Below, piece by piece: positions 18,938 to 38,420 of a DNA stretch of 64,000 nucleotides. The notes beneath the pieces are model-generated. The model saw only the letters and a program-made list of their open reading frames with translations. It had not been told where the DNA came from and did no database searches. Made by a program: the position numbers and the translations under genes. Positions within the stretch are counted from its first letter, which is position 1. Each line of letters begins with the position of its first letter. Source of the DNA: Ascidiella aspersa (lineage: Eukaryota); contig OZ004612.1 in NCBI GenBank assembly GCA_963924565.1, positions 26,288,001 to 26,352,000 of the forward strand. The letters are read 5' to 3'.

Positions 18938-19838
18938 AAGTCAATTGCCCCCTGAAAGTCGTACGCCGGCAATATCTGCGTATTTCAATTTAATTGTTAG
19001 TTACCAATTTGTTTCTGGATGCCAACGCTTCAATTGAGATTGAAATTAAGTGCAATACATTAAAACCACTTACCTCTAAAATGCCTAAACGACACTAGGC
19101 TATTATATGTTTTTTTCTGGCTAACTTTGCCACATTTTATAAAATGATGTAACTTTATGGAATCCAAAACCATTGGCAGCAGGTTACTGCTTTGCGATCA
19201 CTGTTCCGCCAACGTGTATATATACCAGATTTTGTTTTGCAATGAATGATTTTGTGCAACAGTTATCCTTTATAATCTTGCAAACTTACATTGTAATGTG
19301 TGTTTTAAACAATCAGAAAAAAATTCTAATCGCCTGGCTACGGAAGATCTCGTGTACCAAAAAACTAGAAAATACGTCTGTTCGAAAGCTTGTAAATTTT
19401 ATTAAATCCATTTATTTTTTAGTTCAAATGACTTGGGTTGAAGTTAAGTGTTTTCAACATTTAATTACAAAATTTGGCAATTTATCTGGGTTTTTTCGAT
19501 AGTTTTTAGTTGAATAATTGCTTATTATAATTGAATTGGACAACTAATGACTTGGAATGGGACTTGAATACTTTTTTTATAAGTTGTTTCACAGATGACT
19601 TGACTCGGACGTAAGTCATTTCAGTATGCTCATATCTTGTTTACAAAACTGGGTGTAATAGTTTTCCAAGTTTTGAACAGTCTTAGATTTTATCTAAAAC
19701 AAACCTTCTCTAGAACTTATCAATCCAAGGTCATTTATTGGAACTCTAAATAACAAATAAGTCATATCCGAAACAACGAAGAACACGATGCTAAACTAGT
19801 TTACAGTTTCACGTTGTCGACAAACACTGGAACCAGCT

Positions 19839-22304
19839 TCAAATGTCGAAGCATATTTCCAGGTGGTGTGTAAGCAGCTTGTAATGGTGAGCGTACGAGT
19901 TGGGCAAACGGTTGAATCTGTGCCACTCATCACCAGCAAAGTAGTTGCTGAAGTCAATGTCAGCAGCTATCAGCTCCTTGGAGAGACGGGCAGAATGCTG
20001 CGAATAAAATTGACCACTGTTATTCATCAGCTTTAAATCAAGCTGTAGTTTATTTTATGAAAACAGCAGGGGATTGTGGTTGGTTACTAGTGTTTCTTCT
20101 AAGGTGCGTAACTCAGTAAACACCACGCTATTTTATTACGTTAAAGAGCCTAAATAAAAGTTTTAACAGACAAAATACGTTGAAGGGGTTATTTGTTTCG
20201 GTTGGAAGGGGTTTTATGGAGGGCTGATTTTAAACTTTATAAACGGAATATAACTCCATGTGAAAAATACGTTGCAAAGAAAATTATCATAACCAACTTG
20301 CTTGATTTAAACAAGTAGACGTAAAACTGACCCTTATACAAAACCTATTTTGGGCAAAACTTTATCTATAACTTTAGCATGTAGTAACTATCTATATTAA
20401 CTATTGGGTTTATGAAAAGATCAACAAGATAGAAATACAATAGATGTAGCAGTGTAAACCGTATATTGTACTTTAAACCTGTATGTGGACGTTTTCGTCA
20501 GATATTCCGTGAACAAGCACAAAATAATGCTTTCCGTAGTTTTCCAGTTTTTGTAAGGTTGTGGAATTGGCGTACCCCTCCTGTTTTTAAAAACGAAAAT
20601 TTTAAAAACGGAAAAACTGTTGTAAGTGCTGATATCACCTGTAGATTGAATTACGGATTGGATTATATAGTTACTTAGAGTAGTTGTTAGCACAGAGACA
20701 CTCAATATATGGATGTTTTTTAACTGGGAACCATAAGGAGGTACCGAGCTACTGCTACAATAACTGGAATGATTGTTAAAAAGGAAATGGTATTTGGTAG
20801 AGCACATTCTACTCTTATTTCTGCAATGAAACCTTAGGGTGTGTCAGGTGAAACTATAACATACGCTCAACCAGGGAAGGTTTCAAGGGGTGGCCCCATG
20901 GCCATGCCCCTCTCTCTCCCTAAAAAATGTTGGTAAATCAAAAGCATCTTTGTAATGTAGCTTTTGTATTGAAAGTAACCATTCTCCAAATTAAAAATGA
21001 ACCGACGTCACGTGGTTTTCTTAAAGTTGTTTCTTTGTTTCGACAGATTTGCGGTAGCTTTCTGACGGTACATTTTGACGTATCTTGTGACGTCACATTG
21101 TGGCGTAATTTAATAACGCCATCCATGAAAAAATGTCATATGCCCTTACAAAATGTCAAATACCATATGCCCTCTCACAAAATGTCATATGCCCTCTCAC
21201 AAATCCTAAATACGCCTATGCGCTTAAAGAATATGATTGACGTAAACTTAAACACTGCAACTTTGCGTTGCATTTACCTCGTTGTCTCCAGTAGGAAATC
21301 CCATGTACCTTTCCGTATAATGCGAAGAATAGAGAGTCCAGTCCGCTACTGGTGCAACCGCGAACCCGCATTTCAACACTTGGTCGACATCCTCACTAAT
21401 GGCGCGAGCAGTTACGTATCTGGAAATGAGTGGGATATAATGGTTAATTAAACCCAAGGTTTCAGACTTGAAATATTTTTCTATATAACAGAATCTGCCT
21501 GAAGGCTATTTGAGAAAAAGGATTTTAAAGAAAGAAAAATATTTGAGAAAGAAACACAAAAGTAATATAAGATACACAAACGTACGTGTTACAACTGTGA
21601 TCTAGCCCGTCTGGAGTCTCTTTTTGATCAACGATAATGGCTTACGTATTATAAATGGCTTGCATATTAGAAGCCATCTATGACTAACTGAATCAGGCGC
21701 TCAATTATAGAAAATAACAATAGCCTCCAGTGAGGTTCGAACTCACGACCTCCGGTCATACCAGAACCGACCCTCTACCAACTGACCTAAATAGGCTCAG
21801 AGTAACAACCATGAAGTCAATGCTTACCACATAATGTTAGTACTAGCAACAACTTCACATTGAAGGGGATAAGGGGTTGCATAACTACTGTATATTATTG
21901 CAAGTGAGCAAAACTTGTTGGTTTAAATTTTTTACTACGCACACTTTATTTCCAATTTAGTTTGTTATGCCTAACTTAAAAAACATTGTTGTTCATTTAG
22001 GGTGCAATACAAATAAATAGTAAAACAGCCATTGATATAATTATTGCATTGCAATACATCTGTACATATAATTTTAAACAGCATGGTGTGTTGCTCCTCG
22101 TGGAAGCCTTAAATATCAATCATTACTTTATACCTTCAAATATACTTTTAAGTACTGTTTTTTATCTCACCCTCCATAAGATCTTCCCCATATTGCGATC
22201 CTACTTGAATCGATGTAATCGAACTTTGTCGAGATTTGTCGTGCCGCTTCTGATTTGTCGTGCCGCTGGTCCAACGGCTCGCAATGACCAAGTTTGCGGT
22301 ACAC
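19839..22304 (-). CDS. Second DPP4-family catalytic cassette (B): four open exons carrying a complete Ser/Asp/His triad; alternative 3' end of the DPP4-like gene or a 5'-truncated tandem paralog
   Basis: Exons 22304-22171 (VYRKLGHCEPLDQ..IDSSRIAIWGRSYGG), 21419-21278 (YVTARAISEDVDQVLKCGFAVAPVADWTLYSSHYTERYMGFPTGDNE), 20580-20479 (EGYANST..VLVHGISDENVHIQ) and 19997-19839 (HSARLSKELIAADIDF..GDEWHRF..ICFDI*). All have AG/GT sites and matching phases. AATAAA on the - strand at about 19734-19739. Confidence 0.8.
21600..21796 (-). mobile_element. tRNA-derived SINE copy
   Basis: Same head (gtgaggttcgaactcacgacc...ctctaccaactga) and tail (tctagccc.tctg) as 27074-27278. Confidence 0.75.
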
Positions 22305-22559
22305 CTGTTGGAATCACACACACAATCCACTTCAAAATGATTAAAATCTTTTTTATAATCGCCTTGTCGAAAAATGACTCAAGGCCTACTTTGATAATGA
22401 ATTTGCTTCTGGGCTCACACAGATGACAAAACATGAATTGCAAAAAATCGATGTAACTGGAAGAAGTTTAACACCGGTCCGCGTTTGGGTAATCGAACAG
22501 TTTTATGCATAAATTATACAGTAGATCGCAGTGTTGTAATGACTTAAGTCAATGACTTG

Positions 22560-22705
22560 TAATGGTTGGAGGTTGTAGTTAGACGTAATAAGAATATCAA
22601 AGCCCATACAGAAGTAGGTATCATTTTTGAACGTTTCGAATAACTCTTTATTTATTTTCAACATACAAAATGATAACTACTTCTGTATGGGCTTTGATAT
22701 TCTTA
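22560..22705. repeat. Palindromic dispersed element with about 39-bp inverted arms
   Basis: Arms 22589-22627 and 22667-22705 (1 mismatch). Copies near 44075-44210, 52100-52230, 54065-54135 and 54710-54790. Confidence 0.75.
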
Positions 22706-22826
22706 AAATAAACCTTGCTTTAACTTTTTAAGTTATGCAACGAAACAACTCAAATTTCTGAATATATATGTTCACATTACTTTGTCATATGATGTAACGT
22801 AGCACTTCATTGAGTTTGAATTTTAC

Positions 22827-23509
22827 CTTTAGTTCTCCAAAGATGTCGAATCCTCGGCAGACCCTCCCCAGTGCTATTTGCCATCTCATTCCACAACTTG
22901 AGAATCCGCCAATCCGCATTTGAACACTTGGTCGACATTCTCACAAATGGATCGAGCAGTGGCATATATGAAGTGAATAATGGCTATAGTCAGTTAATTA
23001 AGTGGAAGCTTTGTCGTGGAATACTAGGGCTAATACACATTTAGAAAAACACACATCTCGCTTAGCAATGATGGGTGCACAAAGTCGATGGATGTTGAAA
23101 TGCGACATTAGACTCGATTATAGTCTCAGAAAAAACATAAGATTAGGCCTACATCAAATACTGCGCCTTTTACACGTTTGATGATAGTCGAAACAATTGT
23201 TTTCAATAATGGCTACCAAAAGTGACAATAAGTGGTGGGCCGCACGTAAACATCAGGCGGGCCGCAATGCGGCCCGCGGGACGCAGGTTGGACATCCCTG
23301 GTATGAGGTAACATAAATTAAGCACTAGTAAAAAGTCGACCACGCCATATTATATATAGCGCCTTTGTTTAGCACCGTATTTATAGGCTGAGTATAAGTA
23401 ACCCTCCATCAGGTTTCATCACTGAGTCATATCTGATCAACCCATAGCTATCTATACAAATTTCTCTTCATGTGTTATCTTACCCACCATACGATCTTCC
23501 CCAAGTATG
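22827..23509 (-). pseudogene. Relics of further DPP4-like copies: WGRSYGG fragment plus a chimeric pseudo-exon
   Basis: 23503-23484 reads TGG GGA AGA TCG TAT GGT GG|GTAAGA. 22967-~22905 reads YATARSICENVDQVFKCGLA with the acceptor mutated AG>AT. It is fused to ~22887-22827 [20 protein letters not shown]|GT, a copy of the propeller exon at 31292-31352. Confidence 0.8.
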
Positions 23510-23984
23510 CTGGACAACAATAAACCAAATTACACGTTTTTCATTTCTTTCAAAGCTTAACACTATAAGAAAAATTAAAACAAAAAAGCTTAGAATTGCA
23601 AAAATTTTTAAATTGAAAAAAGGGAATTACTTTGCAAAAAAATCCAAAACAAAAACATACGTTAAATACCAAAGCATCAAAACAATAAATATTCTATAAC
23701 AATCATATATTATAACGTCATACCGAGGCAAAATTACCTATAAATTGTTTAAGCCAGATTTTGTCCAAACAAGCGCTTTTTACAGCTTCCTTCAACTTGA
23801 AAGTACGCAAGGACTGAAATAAGTTTTGGCGAGGAGATGGTGGTACTACGTTACTATGCGCATAATTTTGTAAACGTTACGGAATCTATTAGGTACCGTA
23901 TTACACGAAACGTTCCACACATTATTTAACAAAGTGTATAGGGTGACTTTAAGTCACGAAATAATTCCATAATATACTAGCATT

Positions 23985-24405
23985 ACGATAGGTTACGAAC
24001 CGTAGTATCGTCGCGTAAAAAAGCGAAATATAACGCCACGTAAATGCAACGATACACAACAAAGTGCGACCTAACGAAGCGCAATGTAATGCAACGTATC
24101 ACAAAAAACGTTACGTAATGAAACGTAATGTAATGTAACGTAAATTGACAAAATACAACGCGACGTAGCGAAACGCAATGTAATGCAAGGTAACCCAAAA
24201 AACCTAACGGAACTTAAAATGACGTAACACAAGTTAATGTGGCCCCATAAAACGCAATGCAACGTAACGCAACGCAAATAAACGTAACATAACGTAATGT
24301 AAATAAACGTAACGTAACCTAACGTAACGCGAATAAACGTATCGTAACGTAACGGAACGCAACGTACGTAACGAAAATAAATGTAACGTAACACTTCGTA
24401 ACGTA
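23985..24405. repeat. Degenerate (AACGT)n pentamer microsatellite immediately 3' of the cassette A stop
   Basis: aacgtaacgcaacgc...aacgtaacgtaac periodicity. Confidence 0.85.
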
Positions 24406-24434
24406 TTGCCAGCGCCTCCCACCAACGAAGTTGA

Positions 24435-27400
24435 CTACTCCAAGTCGAAGCAGGTCTTCATCTTTCGCGTGATCGTCTTGTAAACGTCTCGGTAGTTGTT
24501 GGGCGTGTTGCGCATGTTGTGGTCGTTATCGGCGGCAAACGAAGCGTCGTGGTCGACGTCGCTGGCGATGAGACGCGCGCTGAGACGAGCCGCGTTCTGG
24601 AAGTGAACGTTCTCATCGCTCGTACCATGAAGAATGGTGAATTTGTGCGACTTGAAGTTCTCCATCGAGTTTAGAGCGGAGCTGGCCTTGTAGTTTGGCT
24701 GCGACAAAACGGTAAACGTATTTAGATAAATAAGGTACAAATAAAACTAATTTTGTTTAAGGCAGAGTAAAACACGGGACCGGACTTTACTTAAACTTAT
24801 ATTTTGCGGACAAAACAAAAAACAAACAAAACGATGAACTTGCGTAAAGATGTAAAACTTAAAGTTTAAAACGTAGATTAAAATATAGGATAAAACTTTG
24901 CTTAAAAACATATATTTTGATTAAGTGGCATCACTAGTTTTGGTGGAGCAGTAATCTGCAGGAAAAACTGCTGTCAATGATTGGATTTGCTGACACGCCA
25001 CTTTGCATAAAGTCAAGGCACTTTATTAAGTTTATTAATTTACGCATAATTTTCAGCCAAGACAACCAATATAGAATTCATCTTTAACTTTTACAATCTT
25101 GGTGGTTTTAAAATAAAACGATAAAGCAAATTACCGTTTTGGAGGATGTCTATAGTTTCAATTGGGATTTTTTTTAGAAAGTATAAAGTTTTGTTGATAT
25201 CTTTTTTATTGAATTTAAAAAAAACTTGTCAACCTTATATAAGATCAAAATAAAAGGAATCTTTTACGGCACTTTTGAGCATACTATGCCGGGTAGCGAC
25301 TTTCTTTTTTAAAGTATTCAACATTTGCCAATTGTCTCCTTTTCAACTTGGCAAAGACTGGCGATATAATAGCATTCGTAGGTTGACATTTACCATGTTA
25401 TCGCTTGGTTTGAGCATGAAGCGTTCCGTGTAAATGGCGTGGTAGAAATGCCAGTCGGTGACAGGGGCCACTGCATATCCGCACTTGTAAATGTTCTCGC
25501 TGTCGGCCGCTATGGTTTTGGTTGTTGCATACCTGTGCAAAAAGTTTGAGAAAGGTGGCATGACTATACATACAACTAAGAATAACCAAAATCGACAAAC
25601 GCATCCGGAAAAACTAACTAATATCGGTCGGTTCATTCAAGATTAAAGTACACTTCAGCCAGGCTAAAAAAGTCACTATACCATGTGAGCTACACAGGCT
25701 CAGAGAGGAAAACGTCAAAAATCCTACAGAATTCGGTTAGAGTAACTGCAATCTTGTAAATTGAATGTCAATCAAAATATACAGTATACAAAGGCTAGAG
25801 GGATCGCACTAGAATCAAACGCGTGTCAGAGAGATTGTTCGTAGCAAATCCTTGTGTTCTTTGCCATCCGCAATATAGCACCCTTTTTTCAGGTTGAAAT
25901 TTTATAGGAAGGGTTTAATGTGTAAAAAGAGGTGCTTAATTCCATTGAAAATACAATTAAACGTCGGTCTTTTAACATTTAATCCAATCAGGCCCTAAGT
26001 GAATAATCGGTTTGCTGGCAAACAATTTGTTACGTTAGACCAGTGGTTCCCAAACTTTTTTATTCCGTGGCCTAATTTTTTTTACAAAACAGATCGTAGC
26101 CCATTGTTTTTTCCACCACTATTGATGACTAGTTTATATTGGTTGACAAAGGGTTTTTTTCAAATTTTACAAGGATTTTATTTGTTGATACTACTTGTCT
26201 AACAACAAACGGAGCTTTGATAAGTTTCCAGTCTGTTGAAGTTGAACAACTCGCACGCGCACAGTTTTCGCAGTCACAAGACGTTTTACTTATGCAAACA
26301 ACCATTTAGGAAAACAAAATGTATAATTGTAATGTTTTTAAATAGTTCTATAGCCCACTTAAAATGGTCTTATGGCCCACTACTGGGCCATGGCCTACAG
26401 TTTGGGAATCATTGCGTTAGAGTCTAGTAGCCTAGTTTCTTTCAACTTACCCGCCATATGACCAACCCCATATCGCCTTTCTAGAAGGGTCGATGAACGA
26501 GTTTTGTTCGGCCAAGATTCGAGCAGCCGCGATTTGGTCGAGCGGTTCAAACTCACCGAGACGTTTGTAAACCTTGAATGAAAAGTTAAATCAAGTATGA
26601 TTTGAAAATTGAAATGTGTTTTTTAAGTGTTTCCCCCTAAGTTTTCCCCACTGTTGGGAATGTTTACCTACTTTATCGAAAATGAATTCCATTTTGCATT
26701 CGATAAAGTTATTTTGTATTGACATCGACAATTTCAAATATGACTGCGTCTTTTTACAACTATTATATGCTTTGCCATTTGGTTTGTTGATATACCTTTT
26801 CGAAATACGGATGTTGGTTATAGAGGGGGTTGATATGACGTTGCAAAGTTACGTCTAACGTGAATTCCGAATTAAGCTCAGACATACCATAATTATCAAT
26901 TATAAAGGGGTTATTCTGACAAATATGCATTCAGTGCTTTGTCAAAAGAATCCCTTAATAATTGACACAATGCCTGGCAGCAACAGTATATTCATACCAT
27001 AACTATAGTTTATACTCGCGTGGAACTTAGCACATTTTTGCACAACAAATAATACAGTTTATTATCAACTGTTATCTAGCCCTTCTGAAGCCGCTTTTTG
27101 ACCAACTATCAAGGTTTACGTATAATTAGTACACCGGAAGCCATCGCAGACTCAACAAATCTGTCGGTCAATGATGCAAGCAGAGCAGACTAGAAAAACA
27201 ACTAGCTTGTAGTGAGGTTCGAGCTCACGACCACCGGTCAAGCCGGGACCGTCGCTCTACCAACTGAGCTACACAGGCATGGAGAGTCGAGAAACAACCA
27301 TACGCGATCAATGTTGCAAGCAAGGAAGGCTGGAAAAACTACCAGCCTGCAGTGAGGTTTGAACTCACGACCTACGGCCACAACGGTATATTCACACGTT

Positions 27401-30400
27401 GCCAGCTGACCTTTAATTTGGAATCATAAACAATCTCATGAAACTTTTTAGTTATATTCACATAATGCCAGCTATACTATTTAGCTACAAGTATCCTACA
27501 ATCACAAGTGCGTAAGTGTTGGATCACAGCAGAACCCCAAACTCACCATGTGCATTGTTTCGTCTCCCCTGAATCCCGTTCCTCTGCCGTCAAAACTGGT
27601 GACGATCACGCCGAGTGAGCTGGACACATAATCCTTCCAAGACACTGCAAACCTGTCGGTCACCTCCTGATAGCCGGGACCTTTGAAGTAAACGACCGCG
27701 GCATGTATACGCTTGAATTAAGCTAGCTTTGGAGTCGAGTTGCGTATGGTCAAAATCAGTGGTTGTATTGAATTAAGTCAATGATTTTAGGTAAATGCCT
27801 AATTCACTGTTTTCAAAAGACTTAACTTGACTTAAGTCAATTTGGTAAAATAACTTGAATTACGTTTTTGGACAATCACTTGATTTGGACTTCAATAAAT
27901 CGGCCTAGTTACTTAGATTGAAATTAAGTGTTTTTATTTACCATTTTATTATAAAACGAAGCCAATTATATCAAGCTTTGTAAATAAAACGGTTAGATTG
28001 CTACACGTTATGTATGTGGTAGTTTTATACTGAGTTTTGCTCATAATCGGATATGTTTAGCAGTTTTAGTGGTTTATTGTTTTATGTTAGTGATTTGACT
28101 TGGATATGTATTGTTCTAATACAGACTTGACTGAAACTTTAAGTCATTCCCAATAAGTTGTTAACAACACTGACCAAACTAAATCGGTTCGTCAATACAA
28201 CTCTCTCGAACTTAAAAATGGTAAAGTGTATTTGAGGGAAAAAACATTAAATCCAGCTGAACAGATATGTCGAGCGAAGCGTATTGTAGTTTTAGCTTGC
28301 GACCAGTATACAATATTCATAAGCTATATGAAAACCAAATAAAGCAAAGGTGGATTTAATGGTTTGCCTACTGGCTATCTGACAAACGTGTTTTGAATAT
28401 CTGAATTTAATAACTTTTCTCTTTCTGCTTAGCTCAGTATAACATTTTTTTTCTGTATCATAAAGCAAGACTTCAGTTTGCGTAGCCTTCTACTGATTGC
28501 TGCGTGTGCAGCACGTCCTTCACCCTAGGATAGTCCTTGTTACTGGGTCAGTAAGCCTGAAACTGTTCCCGCTATATTGAACTAAATTTATCGTTTTTTT
28601 ATTCATTTGTGCATAAAACAGGCCAAATGAATTATTGTTAGATCTGTCTTATAAAATGTTATTACAATGGACGTTCTACCTATCGTTTAATTGAAATGCC
28701 TTAATACTGTATTTCGGGTTTGGCTGATAACTAAGGCTTATCACACTTAGCCACAACAATATAGCGTAAACTTATGTACACGACGTGTTTTTTTTTTTTT
28801 AAGCATGATTAAGTTCTTGTAATCACCTAATATAAGTGAACGGACTAAAAACACCAGGACACGGTGACAATACAAATAGAAAGCATACATACTTTAGAAA
28901 CTGCCTATAAAAAAGTCTGGTATGCAGACTTATTCTGGCATGCGGGAGTAAGGAATTTAATCACTGGATATCAGTAGGAATGTCTGTTATACCGATCCAC
29001 AACTAAATAATTACTGTGCTCAAACAAGCAAATAGATGTATTGTAATGATGAAAGGTGTTTTTCCAGGTTATTAAGCCAAAAGTCGTTTTGGCTGTAAAA
29101 GTGATCTCCAGTTGTTAACCTACTGTTTTAGATAAAATTACCTTTCAATGTATAATTGCTGCATTAAATAAAAATCTTGGCTGAAATACAAATAGTTTGT
29201 AATTGGATCGGAGCCGATACAACCCTAGTATCGGTTCCAATCCGATAGTAGATTACTAACCTAACCAGAGGTGTGTATTACCAAGACTCTTTCTTCGCAA
29301 AAGCAAAACACATTGCTCACCTGAATATACTTGCACCATCATGGGGTACTTCTTGGTTGGGTCGAAGTTGGGTGGTTTATGCATCGTGTAGTACCAGTCC
29401 CCCTGCACGCCGGGTAGCTTAATCGTGCCGTACACTCGATCGCGGAAGTAGTATTCTGTTAATCATAATGTTTAGGGGTTTTGGAATTTAAAATACAGTC
29501 AAAAGTAGAGATATGTAATACTTGGCATCTTGTTTCGACATAGATACCTAATATTTGGACTAAACCAATATTCGATATTATAGAAATTTAGACTAAGCCT
29601 ATACCTGATATTTTACCAAAATTGATTAAAAAAACAAATTAGGTGAAATTGAAAAGTTTAAAGGTATTTTTTCAGGTCATTGGGCCAAAGTTGGCTTTAT
29701 AGCATTAATAAGTTTGGCCACATTAGGTTTTTGATTTCTGTTTATTCATTAAGTCCATTTTTACAGATAAAAACGGTTGGTTGAATCGCAAAGCATGGCT
29801 TGAATCCCTTTATTAATTAGGAATCTAATCGACATCATCCCAATTTCGGTAGACGACCAACACTACTACCTGGCATCCTGTATTTGTATTTGATACGATA
29901 ATATCAGACAACCTTTGATGAAAAGGCATGTAACTTAACTTGCTAAAATGGTTTAAAGAGAAACCCTGACAAACAATTGGAGTAGGTTTAAATTAAAACG
30001 TCAGTTGCCAAATAGTATATATATTTGTATTTAGCAGAGTACCTTCCAATTTGTTCTGAAGGTCCGTGTTGTTTTCAGCAATTCTCACAAATTGGTAATC
30101 TCCGACACTATCTTTCTTGTGCACCGTTGAAATGGGAACACCTGCAATAAACAAACACAATTATACAAGCAATACAACAAACAACACAAAAAGATAAATA
30201 TTTTAAAGCACCTAATAACTGTACTTTCGTTTTTACATAATAACATTATGTTGTTATATATAAATGTTATAGTGTGTTGATAAATTAGAAGTGAGCAAAT
30301 TTATTGGCATTGGGGCGCGGGAAATTTGTTTTTATATTTCGTCATTTTTGCTTTATAATATCGTATTTGCATAGCGATTTGACCTTTTTGAAAGCAACGC

Positions 30401-33400
30401 AACGGGTTAAAGTATTCGCCACTTTACTGGTCTTGATTTTTATCAATGTCTGTGAAAATTTAACTAGTCGGCCACAAACCTGTGAGGGTAAAGTTATCGG
30501 AGTAATACGGTATTTCCGCAAAGCTGTATCCTTACCATTGCCAGATCCATACCAGTTAACGATCAAGTAGTTTCCATTTTGGCTGAACGGATTAAAGCTT
30601 GAGTCGCTTTACTGGTGACCCGGACGTGATTTAAACTATTGCGTTAAAAAGTTCTGTATGTAAAGCTGTGGCCTTACCATTGCCAGTTCCACCACAGTTA
30701 ACGACCAAGTAACTTCCGCCCTTGCTGAACGACGGGTTCACCCAGTTGCAACGATCCGCGAAAATTTGATTCAGCTCACACGTGATACAGCTTCGCGTTA
30801 TGTCATCGCCATGAGCTGCATCATATGAAAAGTTGTCACATCAGTTTTTAGGCACTTTACTAGGTTGGTCTCAGCCAATTTAAAACGCTTTCGAGAATTA
30901 AGAGGGTTTCGTGACATCACGCTGGACTGTGTCATATGAAGCGGTTTCACATAAACTGTTTATCCATGAAACTACTTACATTAGTTATTTTAAGAGCTTT
31001 CAAACACGATACACATTTTCTAGTTTATGTAAGGCAAAGATTCGTAATCTTTTCTGGCCATACACCACTTATGGCGCTTATTGTTGTTTGGTACCAACTG
31101 GTTTAATAAAGTATTTTGCTTAATTTACCTATTTTTATTAAACTATAAAATGGAATTAAAAAACCTTGCTCTAAGCGATAGCTGTAGAGATGGTAGAATA
31201 TAATTCGAATCATTGGAGCAAAAAGAGAATATAACTTGATTAATATTCCAACAGTTAATTTTCCTAAACTCCTCATAACAATAAATTTAACCTTTCGCTC
31301 TCCATAGATGTCGAATCCTTGGCAGACCCTCTCCAGTGTTATTTGCCATCTCGGTGCTGGTGTAATAGACCCAGTCGAAAGTCGGATCGTAGTTGTGAAT
31401 AGAGTTGTAGCCTAAGCTGGTGTCGGTTACCTGTAAACATTTAATGTGTGGCAATATCTGTTTGTTTGTTTAATGGGTAATAATGTAGACACTAAATACA
31501 AGTCGATTTTTCTAGCAACAATAATACTATAGCCTTTGTATTACTGGACGTTTAAAACATGTAGGTTCCTCACACTCTGAAGTGGAAATGAAAATTCATG
31601 CTTTCATGTGCTTTGTTTATATATCCTCTACGGGCGTGAGTAACTTTCATTTCTTCTATAGATTTCTAACCCCTCATTCCAGAACGTATAAATTCCTTAA
31701 AGCTTTCACATTTTTTTGAAATAAAGTCAGTGTTTCTCCAACTATGGGACGCCGTTTACTTTCGTTGGGTCATCGACTACAGTAGTTAACGGGGTTAAAT
31801 GTGTTAAGATCGATCCAGTGTAAAAGATATTCAAAATTCGACAAAACGTTTAGAGAAATGGTTGATATTGCTTAAACTGCAATTGACTACTTGTTTTACA
31901 TTTTGTTGCCGTAGGTCACATGATTAGATTTATTGAGATCCACACCAAAATGTATTTAAATTTCGGGAAAATAGTAGGATAAATATGAAGACGTGGTCTA
32001 TAATAATTCAATTGTAATATATTAATGCTACACGTTTTGTTTACTTAAAAAAGTAAAAAAAGTGAATATAATACGGTAGTCATTGTTTAATTATGCATTG
32101 AATTTAGCTAGCCGCAAAAAAAGGTTGAAAAACTTTGCTTTGAAGTGTTAACAAACACGGACCTCGAAACTTCCGTTGGTTCGCCAATCGATGGCCATGG
32201 TGCCGGCGTCCATCCTGGCCAGGTGGGGGAATCCCGCGTTGCTTCTCACGGTGAAGTATTCGCTCTCGCTGTTTGATGGAAAGATGTGCGCCACTTTATA
32301 ATGGCCCACCCAACCGGTAGAGCTCAAATCCATCATGGCGTGGACTAAAAACAAAAAAAAATCTTGTTTAAAAAGGCGGATTTAATCTTTGAATGAACTA
32401 ATCCAATGCACGTCATTCTTTACGTATTCAAAAAAAAAATTGCGGCATGGTTTGTTACAATAGGGGTTCATAAAGTCATAATGAAAACCAGTAGTTTCCT
32501 TGGCTAATGCGTAAATACTATATGATGGTGTTCCCTGAATGCTGTTATGTGGCGTCCTAGAGGCCAAGGCCTAGAGGTTTTTCTGGTGAGTTGTGGATTT
32601 AAACAAAAATTAACCGAAACTAGGGATATCATCGAACGTTGCTTATTCATTCTTCAAAGTTAACAAAGTTGTATGCGGTCGATTAGGAAATTTAATACAC
32701 ATATATCTTACAATGAGAACAGGTGAAGTTAGGTGCCACACAGGTTTCAGACAGGGACTCGTTCTGAAGTCGACTTTTCCAAGTTGGAACGAAGGTGTTG
32801 TTGCTTATCCAAACCGCCGAGTTGAGGTAGTGGTCCGGCCACATCATTTCGATATGCTGGAAGTAAAGTTCCTTTTTGAAGAACAGGAGATAAAAATCGG
32901 CGAGAATAAAAGTGTCTCCAACCGCTTTAATCTCACCAAAAGATCCTAAGGGCTTCGCGGACCCAGTTTAAGATCCGCTAACTTATAAACTTGTAGTATT
33001 GCAATTACTCAAGTCATTGCCTTGACTTAACTTGAGTGCACTTAAGTCACAGTTTTTAAGTGACTTTTAAGTTTTAAGTGTTTTTATAATACTGTGGTGC
33101 TTCGACTCTCAGGAGTTCAACTTACGCCATGTGGGTCAACTCGCGTCGTGTTGGCATGTGTGACGTCAACAATGGTCAGATGGGTCTTGGGGACGGGGGT
33201 TCCCGCTTTGGGGTAAGGGATACTAACCGTCTTGGGGTATTGCAGTTTGCCGTACAGGGTAAACTCGAAAGGTTTAACGTCGGTTTCGTCGATTCTAAAT
33301 AAAAATTAATGTAGAAATTATTGGTATTATAGATAGCAGGATTAGGTCAACCGAATGCTTTCCCGTCTTAATGCTTTAGTATTCGGAGAAAAGTATTATA

Positions 33401-36400
33401 TGTGCATGGTCTAAGATTTTTAGTATTTGCGGCAAAATATTATTTGAGTATTGTTTTCGTTCCATTCACAGCATACCGGGATTTGGGATACAGTTTATTT
33501 AACACATTAACAACAACAGTTTTAAATCATAGCCTTTCAATCAAACACCCTCGCTGTTAAAGATCCCTTATCTCTGAATAATTTTTAGCGTGAAGCGATT
33601 TATTGCAATATTTTTGAACTCTACTTATTTTAAAACTAAAACGGGCCGCAGAAAAAAACTGTGTTTCGCAACATACCGCTTTAAATTATAGCTTCATAGC
33701 AGGCCTTGATAAAGTTAATTAAATGGACTGTAAATATCTCTAATATATTTAAAGTAATGTTCAACTCACTTGGAGATTGCGTTTTCCACTCGTTTCGAGT
33801 CAAAAACGTACAGTTTATAATGGATTCTGTGTGACATTGATTTGCGCCTCTAAAACTCATTGCGCAAACTCCAGCAAAGTGGCTCCCAGTTTATAGTTTT
33901 AGTGGATTTCAGTTTCATATTTGTTTAGTCGTTAAACAGCAGGTTTCTTAGGTCTACTTGTTTTATGACGTCAGACTATGGTCCACGCCAACCAAAAATA
34001 TTTTTTGTATGGTTCCGCGTTTAGAAGTTTAAAAACCCCTGGTTTACGGCATTAAAAGGACTAGTTTCGAGTCAAAAACGTACAGTTTATAATGGATTCT
34101 GTGTGACATTGATGTGGGCCTCCAAAACTCATTGCGCAAACGCCGGCAAAGTGGCTCCCAGTTTATTAAGCCCTGGTTCTATTGGTTTTATTCATTCTGT
34201 ACAAACTTACGTGGCAAATGCGAGGTACTGTCCGTCGGGTGACCACCACAGTAGAGCGTCGTCGTCAGTAATCTCAACCCAGAAAAGCCAGTCGGCGATT
34301 CCGTTAAATGTCATTCGTTCGTCACCGTCGTTAGTTATTCGTACCGGTGACGTCATAGGATTCTGCATACGAAGTAAACAGGAAATGACTTCTTAATATC
34401 TTATGGTGTATATAAGAGGTTCAAAACTGGGATTCCGCGGCACCCTGGGCTGCCATTTCTAATGCTCAAAGGTGCCGAGAAATATTTGAGAATCTTTCAG
34501 AATCTGATTTTTGCTCAACTCCTACAACTTTTTGAATAAGATTAGAGTGAATCAAATCCAATTATAACTTCGTACGTTGTGTGGAGTTGAGGTGTGTTGT
34601 TGAAGTTATGTTTATGGTTTGTTATTTTAGTGAATTACCCACGAAAAAATCCTGTAGGGGTGCAGTAATCTAATTATTATTTCTTAGGGGTGCCGCTAGA
34701 CATAAAAGACTGAAAAACACTGGTGCATAGTATAGGCCACCATCCAAGGCTATCAGCACTTGTACAACCCTGCTTGTAAATAAAGTTTAAATGGTGATTA
34801 AGGTTTTTTTTTAATTTTGATTGAACCAAACTTACCGCCGCTATGTAAACGTCAAATCCTAAGACGTAGGTAAAAGCATGGCCGACTGGAGACCACTTGA
34901 ACTTCTGGATTTTTTCTTCGGGGAAGTCGGTGAACTTAATTTCTGCTCTGTGAGTAGATAATTTTACGTCATACCAACACATGATATGGCTGTTAAAAGT
35001 GTTTGCCTATAGCATAACCAGTATGTTAGTTATTTTGCTTCAAATTTTTGTAACAAAATTTAATTAAATGACGTTATTAAGAAGAATGTTTTTCATTATG
35101 GTTTGAAATTATAGAATTGAGTTATTTTTTCAAAATATATTATTTCTATACATAAGCCTAAAGGCCTTAAAGTGTGACCGTTTGCAATAATCAAGTCAAA
35201 TTGGACTTCCCGTGTACGCCTAAAAACTGATTCATATCGATTTTACGCCGCAACGTTTTAAAATTACTTTTTTAGGCAACTTTCGAAACTAAATATTTAG
35301 AAAACGATAACGGCAGTTTCGTTTATAAATAGGCTATATTTTACACAAGTTGGTTGTACGATTGTAACTATATACTTTTATACAGTTGTGGACATGAATT
35401 GTACGCTATGTTTATATTAACTTTCATCGTGTTTTTTACAAATAATTCATCAAATATTTTCTCATATTTTCCACCAGACATTTATAACAAATTTCACCAT
35501 ATTTTAAATTACGTGATTTTTATTAAGTTACAACATGTTTATCACAATTTGCTTCACCTACCTTTAAGAAACATTTTACACTACATATTTATTATATATC
35601 AGCATGTTTTACGCAGGGCATTTAGTGTCAATTTTTTAAATTAGTTCTACAATTTAATTATTATTACCATTTAACATAATTTTACATTTTCATGACACTT
35701 ACTTCGTAACCATGTCGATGAACGCTATGGAAAAAGTTCTCACGTAATGTGCGTAGCCCTGCAAAAGCACATTTCCAATTGTTGTTTGTTAAATCTTATT
35801 TATAATACCTTAGTTGAATGTTACTCAACATAACCTAAGAAATTATACAGTAGGAGATACTTTCATCAAAGCCTGCAATATGCATTACTTAATTGCTTTT
35901 CGTATTTCAAGGAGCGTATGTAATTTTAAAGTAAAATTGCATACTCGTCTATTTTGAAGAGTTTATCGCTAATAATTTTCAAATTAATAATAATTTGACT
36001 AAATTTATCACTTGCAAAAATATGATTTGGCCAAAAATTATTTTTGAAATACGTTCAATGTTTTTTGTTTTATTTCGAACAGGGACTTTATTTTTGTTTT
36101 ATATTTTTATTTGTCCTTTGTCGCAATAATTCACTTAAACAACGAATAGGTTATTCGAAATACCTATTGCTGAATACTTACGTCAGTTTGGTTAAACTGT
36201 ATTGCCATGAACGTTTGATCGGCTGAAAGGCTCCAAGACATCTGGTTCGGGTAAGAATTCTGCAAAAAAGGAAAAGCTGTGCGCACCTGACATTTGGAAT
36301 GAACAAACAGTGTCTTTCAGAGGTTCTTAAACTGGGGTACATGTTTAAAATATTTAAGAACTCCTACTTTACGGCATTAAAAGCTTTTTAAATAAAAAGT

Positions 36401-38420
36401 TGTAGTTAATTATTTGCACTGCATTTATAGTTGACCTCTTGCAATCAGTTTAAATTTAAACTTTTTTACAAAATACGGAGGTTTAATGGTATATTTCAAC
36501 CAAAAAAATTAAACTGATTAAAAATTTCTTTAAAAGTAACCTTTACTTACAACTTAACCAGTTCCACGTATTTATGTGCAAATTTAAACAAATACCCATA
36601 TGTTGGCTGGAAGTATCTCGTCTTCTGCCAATCCAGTTTCAATATCGACTTTGGCGAACGAACCGTCGCTTCTTCTGTACACATATTCCTCGCCTGCATT
36701 GAAGTGAAAGGCTTAAGTATTAAAGTAAACGTTGTGTTTCGATAACAGCCCACAGGTGATTACAATATATTGCCTGTCAAATATTGCGTTGTCGTAATCC
36801 AAATGTAATTCGTATGATTTGCTTTGTTCTAAGATGTTTTGTTTTCACATTTTATCGTTATAAATATGTTTAACGAAATCGAAAACGATGGTTTAGCTTA
36901 GAGAACAACTTATTTTTACATTTTCGTGCCTCTATTTATGTTTCCTAGAATTGTTTTGCTTAATGGTCCGATTTATTGGGCCAAATAGTAAAATTGTGCA
37001 TAAACGACATCATTCATAGTTTTGATGTCAAAACAAACAAAAACAACTATAACCTGCAGTGAGGTTCAAACTTCGACCTCGGCTATACCGGGACCGTCGT
37101 TCTACCAATGAAATACACAGGCTCAGCAGCAACTGTGATCTAGCCCTTCTGAAGCTGCTTTCTTGACCACCCATTAAGCCTAGAAGTCGTGAGTTCGAAC
37201 CTCACTAAAGGCTGATAGTTGTTTTTCTATCCTACCTTGCTTTTATCATTAAGCGACAGATTCGGTGAGTCTACGATGGTTTTCGGTGTACTGATACGTA
37301 AGCCGTAATCGTTGGTAAAAAACAGCTTTAGAAAGACTATAGTGTAGATCACAGTTGTACATTTGTGTGTGTAGGCTATCTCTCAGTTGAAAGTGATGGG
37401 TGTTTCGTATCTCTATTACACCTTTAAAATCTAAAAACAAAATCAATCAAGGCCCAATACTCTTTCAATGTAGCATGCAATAATTTAAACAAATATGGCG
37501 CCGTTTACCTGACACCCAGTGCGGATAAAAGCTTTTAGCGCGAAACTCCCCGTTCAAGAAGTCGTTAAATTCCATGTACTTCTTGTCATCGGCTTTAGGA
37601 GCAGCATCTGGAGAAACAGAGGCAAAATCTCGAAGTGCAAAGTTTACATTAACCAACTGTACTCAAAAATATGCTTTATAAAAAAAAATAGCAGACTTGA
37701 GAAGTATATTTGTATTGTGACATCAATTTATGACGTCATCTCTAGAATTAATTTGCTCGGAGAAGTTTAATTACAAGTTTTTAGATTTGTAATATACCTA
37801 GTAGCATCATGAACATCAAAACAGACGTGATGCTCTCAGCGTGCTACAAACACCTGTTCAAGACTTAGAGTGATTCGTTTTCGAAAATTGCTTTATCGTG
37901 TTGTTGCTTGCATTTTTTTTAAATTTTTACTTTGTTTTTGCTTTAATTTATATTATACAAGCGTTGAACGTGCTTCACCCTGGAGAAGGTAACTTGAATA
38001 GGTTTTCGAAACGTTGGAGGAGAAATATAAAACACCTGCTCAAGGATTAGATGCCACGGTAATTAGATATCGCAAATTGTTTTATCGTGTTGTTGCTCGC
38101 GTTTGTTTTCATTTTTCTGTTGTGTTTTACAGTAAGTTGTACTACGAGCGTTCGACGTCGTTCACCTTGAAGAAGGAGACCTAAATAGGTTTCCGAAACG
38201 CGGAAGAAAAAGTACAATTACAAGGTGAGCTGTTTTCAGATTAGTAAGTCAACCAACTAGCCCTACCTCGTTTTCCCCTTTCGCCGACGTTCAAGTCCTC
38301 GTTGATCGAAGAAGACACGAGAAGAAAGAAGAGCAAAGTGCCCACAATCTTCACAACGATTCCGACGGCAAATATGCGCCGTTTGTTGTTCCAGGCCGCT
38401 CGCAAAACACCGCGAAGCAT
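24435..38420 (-). CDS. DPP4: Dipeptidyl peptidase 4 / FAP-like type II membrane serine peptidase (S9B), 18 exons, about 804 aa (isoform/cassette A)
   Basis: GT-AG, phase-consistent exons: 38420-38267, 37607-37509, 36693-36596, 36259-36182, 35758-35703, 34947-34836, 34362-34211, 33294-33126, 32856-32712, 32344-32163, 31430-31292, 30815-30678, 30141-30043, 29455-29321, 27680-27547, 26572-26451, 25532-25394, 24698-24435 (sum 2415 nt). N-terminal signal anchor; motifs [85 protein letters not shown]. The symbol indicates family; DPP4 versus FAP orthology is not resolved. Confidence 0.92.
26041..26414. mobile_element. hAT-type MITE (TIR CAGTGGTTCCCAAAC)
   Basis: Inverted termini; 8-bp TSD cgttagac/cgttagag. 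Confidence 0.8.
27074..27278 (-). mobile_element. tRNA-derived SINE
   Basis: Minus-strand head GCCTGTGTAGCTCAGTTGGTAGAGCG...GTGAGCTCGAACCTCAC with A and B boxes, followed by a shared non-tRNA body. Copies at 12731-12830, 21600-21796 and 37050-37340. Confidence 0.8.
27758..28172. mobile_element. AAGTC/GACTT-rich MITE copy
   Basis: cagtggttgtattgaattaagtc...ttaacaacactg. Confidence 0.68.
30536..30590 (-). pseudogene. Partial tandem duplicate of the 3' part of DPP4-like exon 12, with its donor site
   Basis: [19 protein letters not shown]|GTAAGG versus [19 protein letters not shown]|GTAAGG at 30678-30732. No in-frame acceptor found. Confidence 0.7.
33792..34166. repeat. Direct repeat of about 100 bp (33792-33894, 34064-34166) flanking a MITE family 1 remnant
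   Basis: gtttcgagtcaaaaacgtacagtttataatggattctgtgtgacattgat is identical in both copies. Confidence 0.8.
34415..34722. mobile_element. Degenerate hAT-type MITE
   Basis: GAGGTTCAAAACTGGG...GGGTGCCG...GACTGAAAAACACTG; resembles the element at 6336-6526. Confidence 0.5.
37050..37345. mobile_element. Rearranged tRNA-derived SINE fragments in both orientations
   Basis: Head fragment at 37050-37125 (-) and gtcgtgagttcgaacctcact plus body at 37186-37345 (+). Confidence 0.65.
37848..38215. repeat. Two diverged tandem units of about 180 bp in DPP4-like intron 1
   Basis: aacacctg.tcaag..ttaga, ttatcgtgttgttgct and aataggtt..cgaaacg are shared by both units. Confidence 0.7.

Follow-up and report, generated by a model that had tools for sequence, protein, structure and literature searches.

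Background

In vertebrates DPP4 and FAP are neighbouring whole-gene paralogs of the S9B peptidases which have diverged in specificity, and no swapping of modules is known for them. The joining of a common 5' part to alternative, specificity-setting 3' parts is familiar from other gene families, namely the insect serpins with their reactive-centre-loop exons and lola and mod(mdg4) with their C-terminal exon sets. The subject of this work is a DPP4/FAP-like (S9B) gene of the ascidian Ascidiella aspersa, located on the minus strand of contig OZ004612.1 (C6) in an assembly of 308.6 Mb in 75 contigs. The stretch analyzed, referred to as the window, comprises 64,000 nucleotides (C6:26288001-26352000), and coordinates without a contig prefix are positions within it. 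The exons encoding one beta-propeller are followed there by two sets of exons for the catalytic part of the enzyme, designated modules A and B. Two processes described for other genes provide the frame for such an arrangement: the substitution of homologous exons originating from tandem exon duplication, known as mutually exclusive exons, which is ancient and kept by selection (PMC9741552, PMC5740500), and the subfunctionalisation of splice forms after gene duplication (PMC4417111, PMC1808492).

In this work we have analyzed the age, the constraint and the expression of both modules. An architecture of one propeller with two alternative catalytic modules was probably ancestral to this gene, and the chances that module B is still spliced in A. 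aspersa today appear to us evenly poised.

Results

Organization of the two catalytic modules

The shared upstream exons, encoding the propeller and the beginning of the hydrolase domain, occupy 29319-37596 on the minus strand (bounds approximate, from tblastn matches), and exon 14 ends with ..VQVYSG at about 29319 in phase 1. The next exon on this strand is exon 15, of A type (27547-27680); its translation in the third frame terminates with ..GDETMHM, its end is in phase 0, and a GT donor comes directly after it. Module A lies downstream on the same strand and consists of A1 (26451-26572; nucleophile motif GWSYGG, AG before and GT after, starting in phase 0), A2 (25394-25532; S1 pocket residues, AG/GT borders) and A3 (24435-24698; catalytic Asp and His and the stop codon). 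It is followed, again on the minus strand, by module B, made of B1 (22171-22304; GRSYGG, starting in phase 0), B2 (21278-21419; S1 pocket residues retained, AG/GT borders), B3 (20479-20580; Asp motif HGISDENVH, AG/GT borders) and B4 (19839-19997; AG before, catalytic His in DEWH, ending in a stop codon). Exon A3 equals B3 and B4 fused, so that module A has one intron fewer than module B. No internal stop codon is present in any A or B exon, and AG/GT dinucleotides are found everywhere except at the ends of the final exons, which are the stops. Each module contains a complete triad (GWSYGG, SDENVH and DNDH in A; GRSYGG, SDENVH and DEWH in B), and the pattern V-x-x-W-x-x-Y-x-x-x-Y of the proline S1 pocket, whose residues we take to be V656, W659, Y662 and Y666 in human numbering, is kept in both A2 and B2. 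When the exons were scored one by one against PF00326 (Peptidase_S9), A1, A2, A3 and B2 were above the cut-off and B1 just below it (21 bits), B3 and B4 being too short for scoring alone.

Both joints are in frame, as exon 15 ends in phase 0 and A1 and B1 each start in phase 0; the A route adds 174 residues after exon 15 and the B route 178. The fit between exon 15 and B1 is not independent evidence of function because intron positions are common to S9B paralogs. Splicing from exon 14 directly to B1 was rejected, since the phase 1 end of exon 14 would shift the frame. As to 3' signals, module B is followed by AATAAA at 19734-19739 (minus strand), 99 nt past its stop, and module A by a 3' untranslated region (3'UTR; 23550-24434, minus strand) with strand-specific RNA coverage of 1-9x that fades near 23.55 kb. 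Neither AATAAA nor ATTAAA was found in 23400-24437, though the coverage stops within this interval, and module A thus has a covered 3'UTR lacking a canonical hexamer. Within the transcribed 3'UTR, 24106-24392 is occupied by a tandem array based on AACGT, with periods of 5, 25 and 30.

The propeller domain PF00930 (DPPIV_N) gave a single set of four matches at 32.1-34.9 kb, two above and two below the cut-off, and a tblastn search with full-length tunicate proteins revealed no propeller, anchor or start exons belonging to module B, only fragments near it. The initial annotation of the window, made from the letters alone, had described these exons and the lack of own propeller, anchor and start exons for B; its exon coordinates, AG/GT sites, phases and absence of internal stops were all checked and found correct. 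The predicted lengths of 804 and 808 aa agree with the four-residue difference between the routes, and the separate triads and the AATAAA about 100 nt after the B stop were likewise recovered.

Age of the A and B module types

Modules A and B are 49% identical in residues and their synonymous sites are saturated. In a maximum-likelihood tree of the cassette region (built, like the counts and the simulation below, from exon translations combined with X at split codons) the sequences formed two clades with support 96/96, the A type with GWSYGG and the B type with GRSYGG. The A-type clade comprises module A of the window, the proteins of Ciona and Clavelina, isoform X1 of Styela clava with its tandem copy, and four transcript-derived proteins; in the B-type clade module B groups with a paralog from contig C5, and isoform X2 of S. 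clava with two S. clava genes which have a B-type module only. Eight alignment columns define the B type, each with a residue common to all five B-type rows and present in no A-type row; they include a Trp-to-Arg change beside the catalytic Ser and a Met-to-Phe change two residues past the catalytic His.

That B arose as a recent local tandem duplicate of module A is suggested by the adjacency of the modules and the exon phases they have in common. The low identity, the synonymous saturation and the differing intron number speak against such an origin, and the approximately unbiased (AU) tests rejected both A+B as a clade (p 2.6e-5) and A+B+C5 as a clade (p 3.6e-9), from which it follows that B did not arise recently from A. 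This candidate was rejected and its probability is in our view close to nil. Judged from these sequences, the A and B types are older than the split between A. aspersa and S. clava.

The two-module gene of Styela clava

The DPP4-like gene of S. clava is represented in RefSeq by isoforms X1 (XP_039260167, 826 residues) and X2 (XP_039260168, 799 residues). In each of two annotation versions the isoforms are identical over their first 581 residues and then differ throughout the C-terminal part, where X1 has a GWSYGG (A-type) and X2 a GRSYGG (B-type) module. At the level of annotation the two-module arrangement is therefore present in a second species. The swap point matches the exon 14/15 intron of the window gene, so that in S. 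clava a separate version of exon 15 goes with each module, and on this comparison the ancestral swap point is placed one exon earlier than the one available in the window, between exons 14 and 15, with the B module of A. aspersa having lost its own exon 15. Further genes of S. clava are a tandem copy with an A module only, which shares 92% identity with X1, and two with a B module only (P0165, P0223, P0224). The B-only genes are each closest to the B module of their own species, indicating that such genes arose in both species.

When the S. clava B module was used as a query, no B-type module outside S. clava was found in the databases; exon B2 as a query gave no identical or near-identical protein, the proteins of A. 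aspersa itself being absent from the databases. In Ciona, isoforms X1 to X3 are distinguished by no more than single residues and not by module. No published description of one propeller with two catalytic modules was found in the literature. The initial annotation had stated that no such arrangement was known in DPP4/FAP genes, which does not hold, as it was already contained in the S. clava models. Its central proposal of one propeller and two triad modules stands as a real architecture in tunicates, given X1 and X2 and the position of module B in the B-type clade; the further part, splicing of B in A. aspersa, does not share that standing.

A B-only paralog on contig C5

A full-length S9B paralog is located at about C5:19101000-19118000 on the minus strand (loci L005 and L008). 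It contains a four-exon cassette of B-like organization with 74.6% residue identity to module B and a B-type exon 15; an A module was not found in it. Propeller joined to a B module is a working protein design. In a tree of the N-terminal part, whose rows for the window gene (414/581 positions) and for C5 (371/581) were assembled from tblastn matches, the C5 propeller is sister to the window propeller with support 100/99, and grouping of C5 with the S. clava B-only genes was rejected (p 8.5e-6). The C5 gene joins the sister of the window propeller to the sister of module B, from which it follows that B-type exons stood behind this propeller lineage before the duplication that produced the C5 and C6 genes. 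That duplication is old, since the synonymous sites of B and its C5 counterpart are near saturation (proportion of synonymous differences pS 0.67, dS about 1.7). The simplest history compatible with these trees would be duplication of an ancestor having the propeller, A and B, and subsequent loss of A from the C5 copy; the C5 gene looks like the B isoform turned into a gene of its own.

These data bear on another origin of module B, as the 3' end of a separate tandem paralog which has lost its 5' part and was never spliced to this propeller, the S. clava X2 model then being chimeric. Scattered S9B fragments in the A-B interval and in the flank are as expected from such a past, the fit of phases is automatic among paralogs, and RefSeq XP models can be chimeric. 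Nevertheless, the C5 gene pairs the sisters of both parts, and the other placements were rejected; the N-terminal tree and its test also led us to reject B as a piece of an old, distinct gene lineage with B modules only. Further, X1 and X2 of S. clava persist in two annotation releases, and no ordered propeller remnants were found upstream of B1, the single fragment there having been copied recently from an exon of this very gene (see below). We consider this origin improbable. The initial annotation had cautioned that B could be a recently 5'-deleted tandem paralog; in that form the caveat is not sustained, and it survives in modified form as a module orphaned recently.

Constraint on module B

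The orphaned-module explanation holds that B is a former second module of the gene, no longer spliced after the C5 gene had taken over the B form and the B-type exon 15 had been lost, so that it is young, still intact and dead. It is favoured by the C5 paralog, in which a propeller of this lineage already comes with a module of B type. The coding sequence itself speaks against this explanation. In comparison with the C5 module, B shows dN of 0.158 and a ratio of non-synonymous to synonymous rates (dN/dS) of only 0.09. Module B retains all eight B-type-defining residues and 41 of the 44 positions invariant in 16 other tunicate rows, functional genes ranging from 0 to 4 changes at these sites. 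By these measures B has evolved under strong purifying selection.

The four exons, the seven splice dinucleotides, the stop codon and the AATAAA are all intact. Neutral decay was simulated with substitutions, indels at one tenth of the substitution rate, and splice sites; the fraction of neutral copies still intact was 19% at 0.02 substitutions per site, 1.7% at 0.05 and <0.1% at 0.1. If B is dead, it must therefore have died very recently.

Decayed copies and repeats around module B

Partial copies of S9B exons are present on both sides of B1. In the A-B interval, all on the minus strand, they comprise a decayed B1-like exon end at 23480-23505 (..WGRSYGG followed by gtaag), a decayed B2-like remnant at 22889-22966 (58% identity to B2 over 26 residues) and, adjoining the latter, a 69-nt copy of the gene's own propeller exon 31284-31352 at 22819-22887 (90% nucleotide identity). 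A block at 19000-19964, which takes in the 3' portion of B4 together with its 3'UTR and a further 0.7 kb, is a segmental duplication with a colinear copy outside the window, about 28 kb away (C6:26278437-26279688, 83-92% nucleotide identity). In that copy B4 is truncated and altered (C6:26279575-26279700, 92% identical). When the differences were polarised with C5, two non-synonymous changes fell in the truncated copy and the one change of B4 itself was synonymous: B4 has kept ancestral residues where the truncated copy changed, which again speaks against B being dead.

A B-type exon 15 was found as a pseudo-exon about 5 kb before the window start and about 25 kb from B (C6:26282720-26282872, plus strand); it is inverted, is interrupted by an in-frame stop and departs from the GRGTG and GD motifs. 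Possibly it represents the first exon of module B, moved away from its former position.

The A-B interval also contains a high-copy element at 22589-22705 with 39-nt inverted arms (22589-22627 and 22667-22705). It belongs to the first of the very high-copy stretches observed at 22500-22705, 21700-21900 and 27100-27300, where DNA word depth reaches up to 1e5-1e6 and RNA reads are seen on both strands.

Transcription of the two routes

The RNA evidence comes from a single run (X3), the only one for A. aspersa, about 6% of which was read; in the layout of these reads splice joints are masked by repeat-derived joints. On the correct strand exon 15 and A1-A3 were covered roughly 1-4x and the 0.9-kb A 3'UTR up to 9x. 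Transcription along the A route runs into the 3'UTR of that module and finishes there, and A is the expressed default. Across 21900-22499, which includes B1 and its flanks (22100-22499), the run at its low depth contained zero reads, and no indexed RNA run holding the B region was found. Had B been used as often as A, about 3-4 reads would be expected in this interval (a rough figure from bin depths, not computed), so that B is a minor route at best in that sample; it may be a minor or tissue-limited isoform.

Family assignment

The gene combines the features of S9B peptidases: a PF00930 propeller, a PF00326 hydrolase, the triad in the order Ser-Asp-His with the Ser in G-x-S-Y-G-G, and the proline S1 pocket. 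In the cassette tree both modules fall within the tunicate S9B clade. Its nearest named proteins are those of the tunicates Ciona, Clavelina and Styela clava, at about 55-65% identity. The propeller motif at 34210-34350 (minus strand) reads DWLFWVEIT and has a single Glu at the place where, with positions assigned after human DPP4, a Glu-Glu pair would anchor the free N-terminus of the substrate; the Glu-Glu signature of dipeptidyl aminopeptidases is thus lacking, and the S. clava protein has the same single-Glu pattern. This argues against a classical DPP4 product and has no bearing on S9B membership. Judged by this motif, the product is perhaps no dipeptidyl aminopeptidase of the classical kind.

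Discussion

The explanation that we favour is that the window contains a tunicate S9B gene descended from a two-module ancestor, with module B remaining in use, either weakly or in certain tissues; taken as a whole, this statement has in our estimation an even chance of being right. The ancestor would have been an S9B (DPP4/FAP-like) gene with one propeller and either an A-type or a B-type C-terminal module, each module supplying its own Ser, Asp and His, S1 pocket, stop and 3' end. In A. aspersa, the presumed use of B would require transcription past the A 3' end and then splicing of the exon 15 donor at 27547 to the B1 acceptor at 22304. The predicted product consists of the A-type exon 15 and the B module. 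Such a protein would probably keep the preference for proline at P1 and be altered on the prime side through the Trp-to-Arg change, as predicted from human DPP4 structures. Heterodimers of the A and B forms are pure speculation.

Several observations weigh against continued use of B and fit the orphaned-module explanation instead. There were zero RNA reads on B1. No B-type exon 15 was found between A3 and B1 or elsewhere in the window, the A-type copy at 27547-27680 being the only exon-15 homolog there and the decayed inverted copy with its stop lying outside; the A-type exon 15 is the only one to which B1 could be joined, and such a pairing of exon 15 and module is absent from both S. clava and C5. 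The terminal branch of B is 1.7 times that of C5 (0.24 vs 0.14), three invariant sites have been hit, among them a change of HGT to HGI beside the catalytic Asp, and B1 has a 4-codon insertion relative to A1 and to the C5 paralog. A single polymorphism is listed for B1, and it replaces Ile by Val, compared with 6/6 synonymous in the A exons, the counts being small and many variants not listed. Decayed S9B pieces surround B, and the rearrangements around it are about 8-12% diverged. The favoured explanation is also weakened in that X1 and X2 of S. clava are computed RefSeq models, known here as annotation alone. Set against the orphaned module are the intact exons and signals, the dN/dS with all type-defining residues retained, the small window of time that neutral survival of 1.7% at 0.05 substitutions per site leaves for a death of the module, the ancestral residues of B4, and the fact that the RNA consists of one low-depth run. 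The orphaned module is a distinct possibility which we place short of an even chance, and between B still spliced and B recently orphaned the balance is close to even.

A broader form of the favoured explanation states that since before the split from S. clava the ascidian S9B gene has spliced its propeller to either module, with the same gate and a different prime-side specificity, and that both routes are used in A. aspersa despite the presence of the C5 gene. We advance it tentatively, as approaching an even chance without reaching it.

If true, the swap of a triad module behind a fixed propeller would amount to an experiment of nature in domain recombination, and this in the DPP4/FAP family, the specificity of which is of pharmacological importance. 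Five sequences belonging to two species have the Trp-to-Arg change beside the nucleophile Ser as a fixed difference, which singles out one residue of interest. With a two-module gene and a B-only paralog in one species, the locus illustrates cleanly how alternative splicing and gene duplication can be traded for each other, and the decayed partial copies nearby serve as neutral controls for B.

Among the systems compared, the closest is the S. clava gene, in which, as in the window, one N-terminal part is joined to an A-type or a B-type module; it differs in that its B module has its own B-type exon 15, missing in the window, and its A module has a longer basic tail. With mutually exclusive exons the locus has in common the alternative homologous segments from tandem duplication, whereas the unit in the window comprises 3-5 exons, the terminal one among them and with it a separate stop and 3' end, i.e. 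an alternative last exon set, and replaces the whole catalytic triad and the S1 pocket. Subfunctionalisation of splice forms is resembled in that C5 looks like the B form as its own gene and the window gene expresses the A form; the difference is that the window gene still holds an intact B module. The insect serpins, lola and mod(mdg4) swap an inhibitory loop or a DNA-binding domain and not catalytic residues. In vertebrate DPP4 and FAP, unlike in the window, diversity comes from duplication of whole genes.

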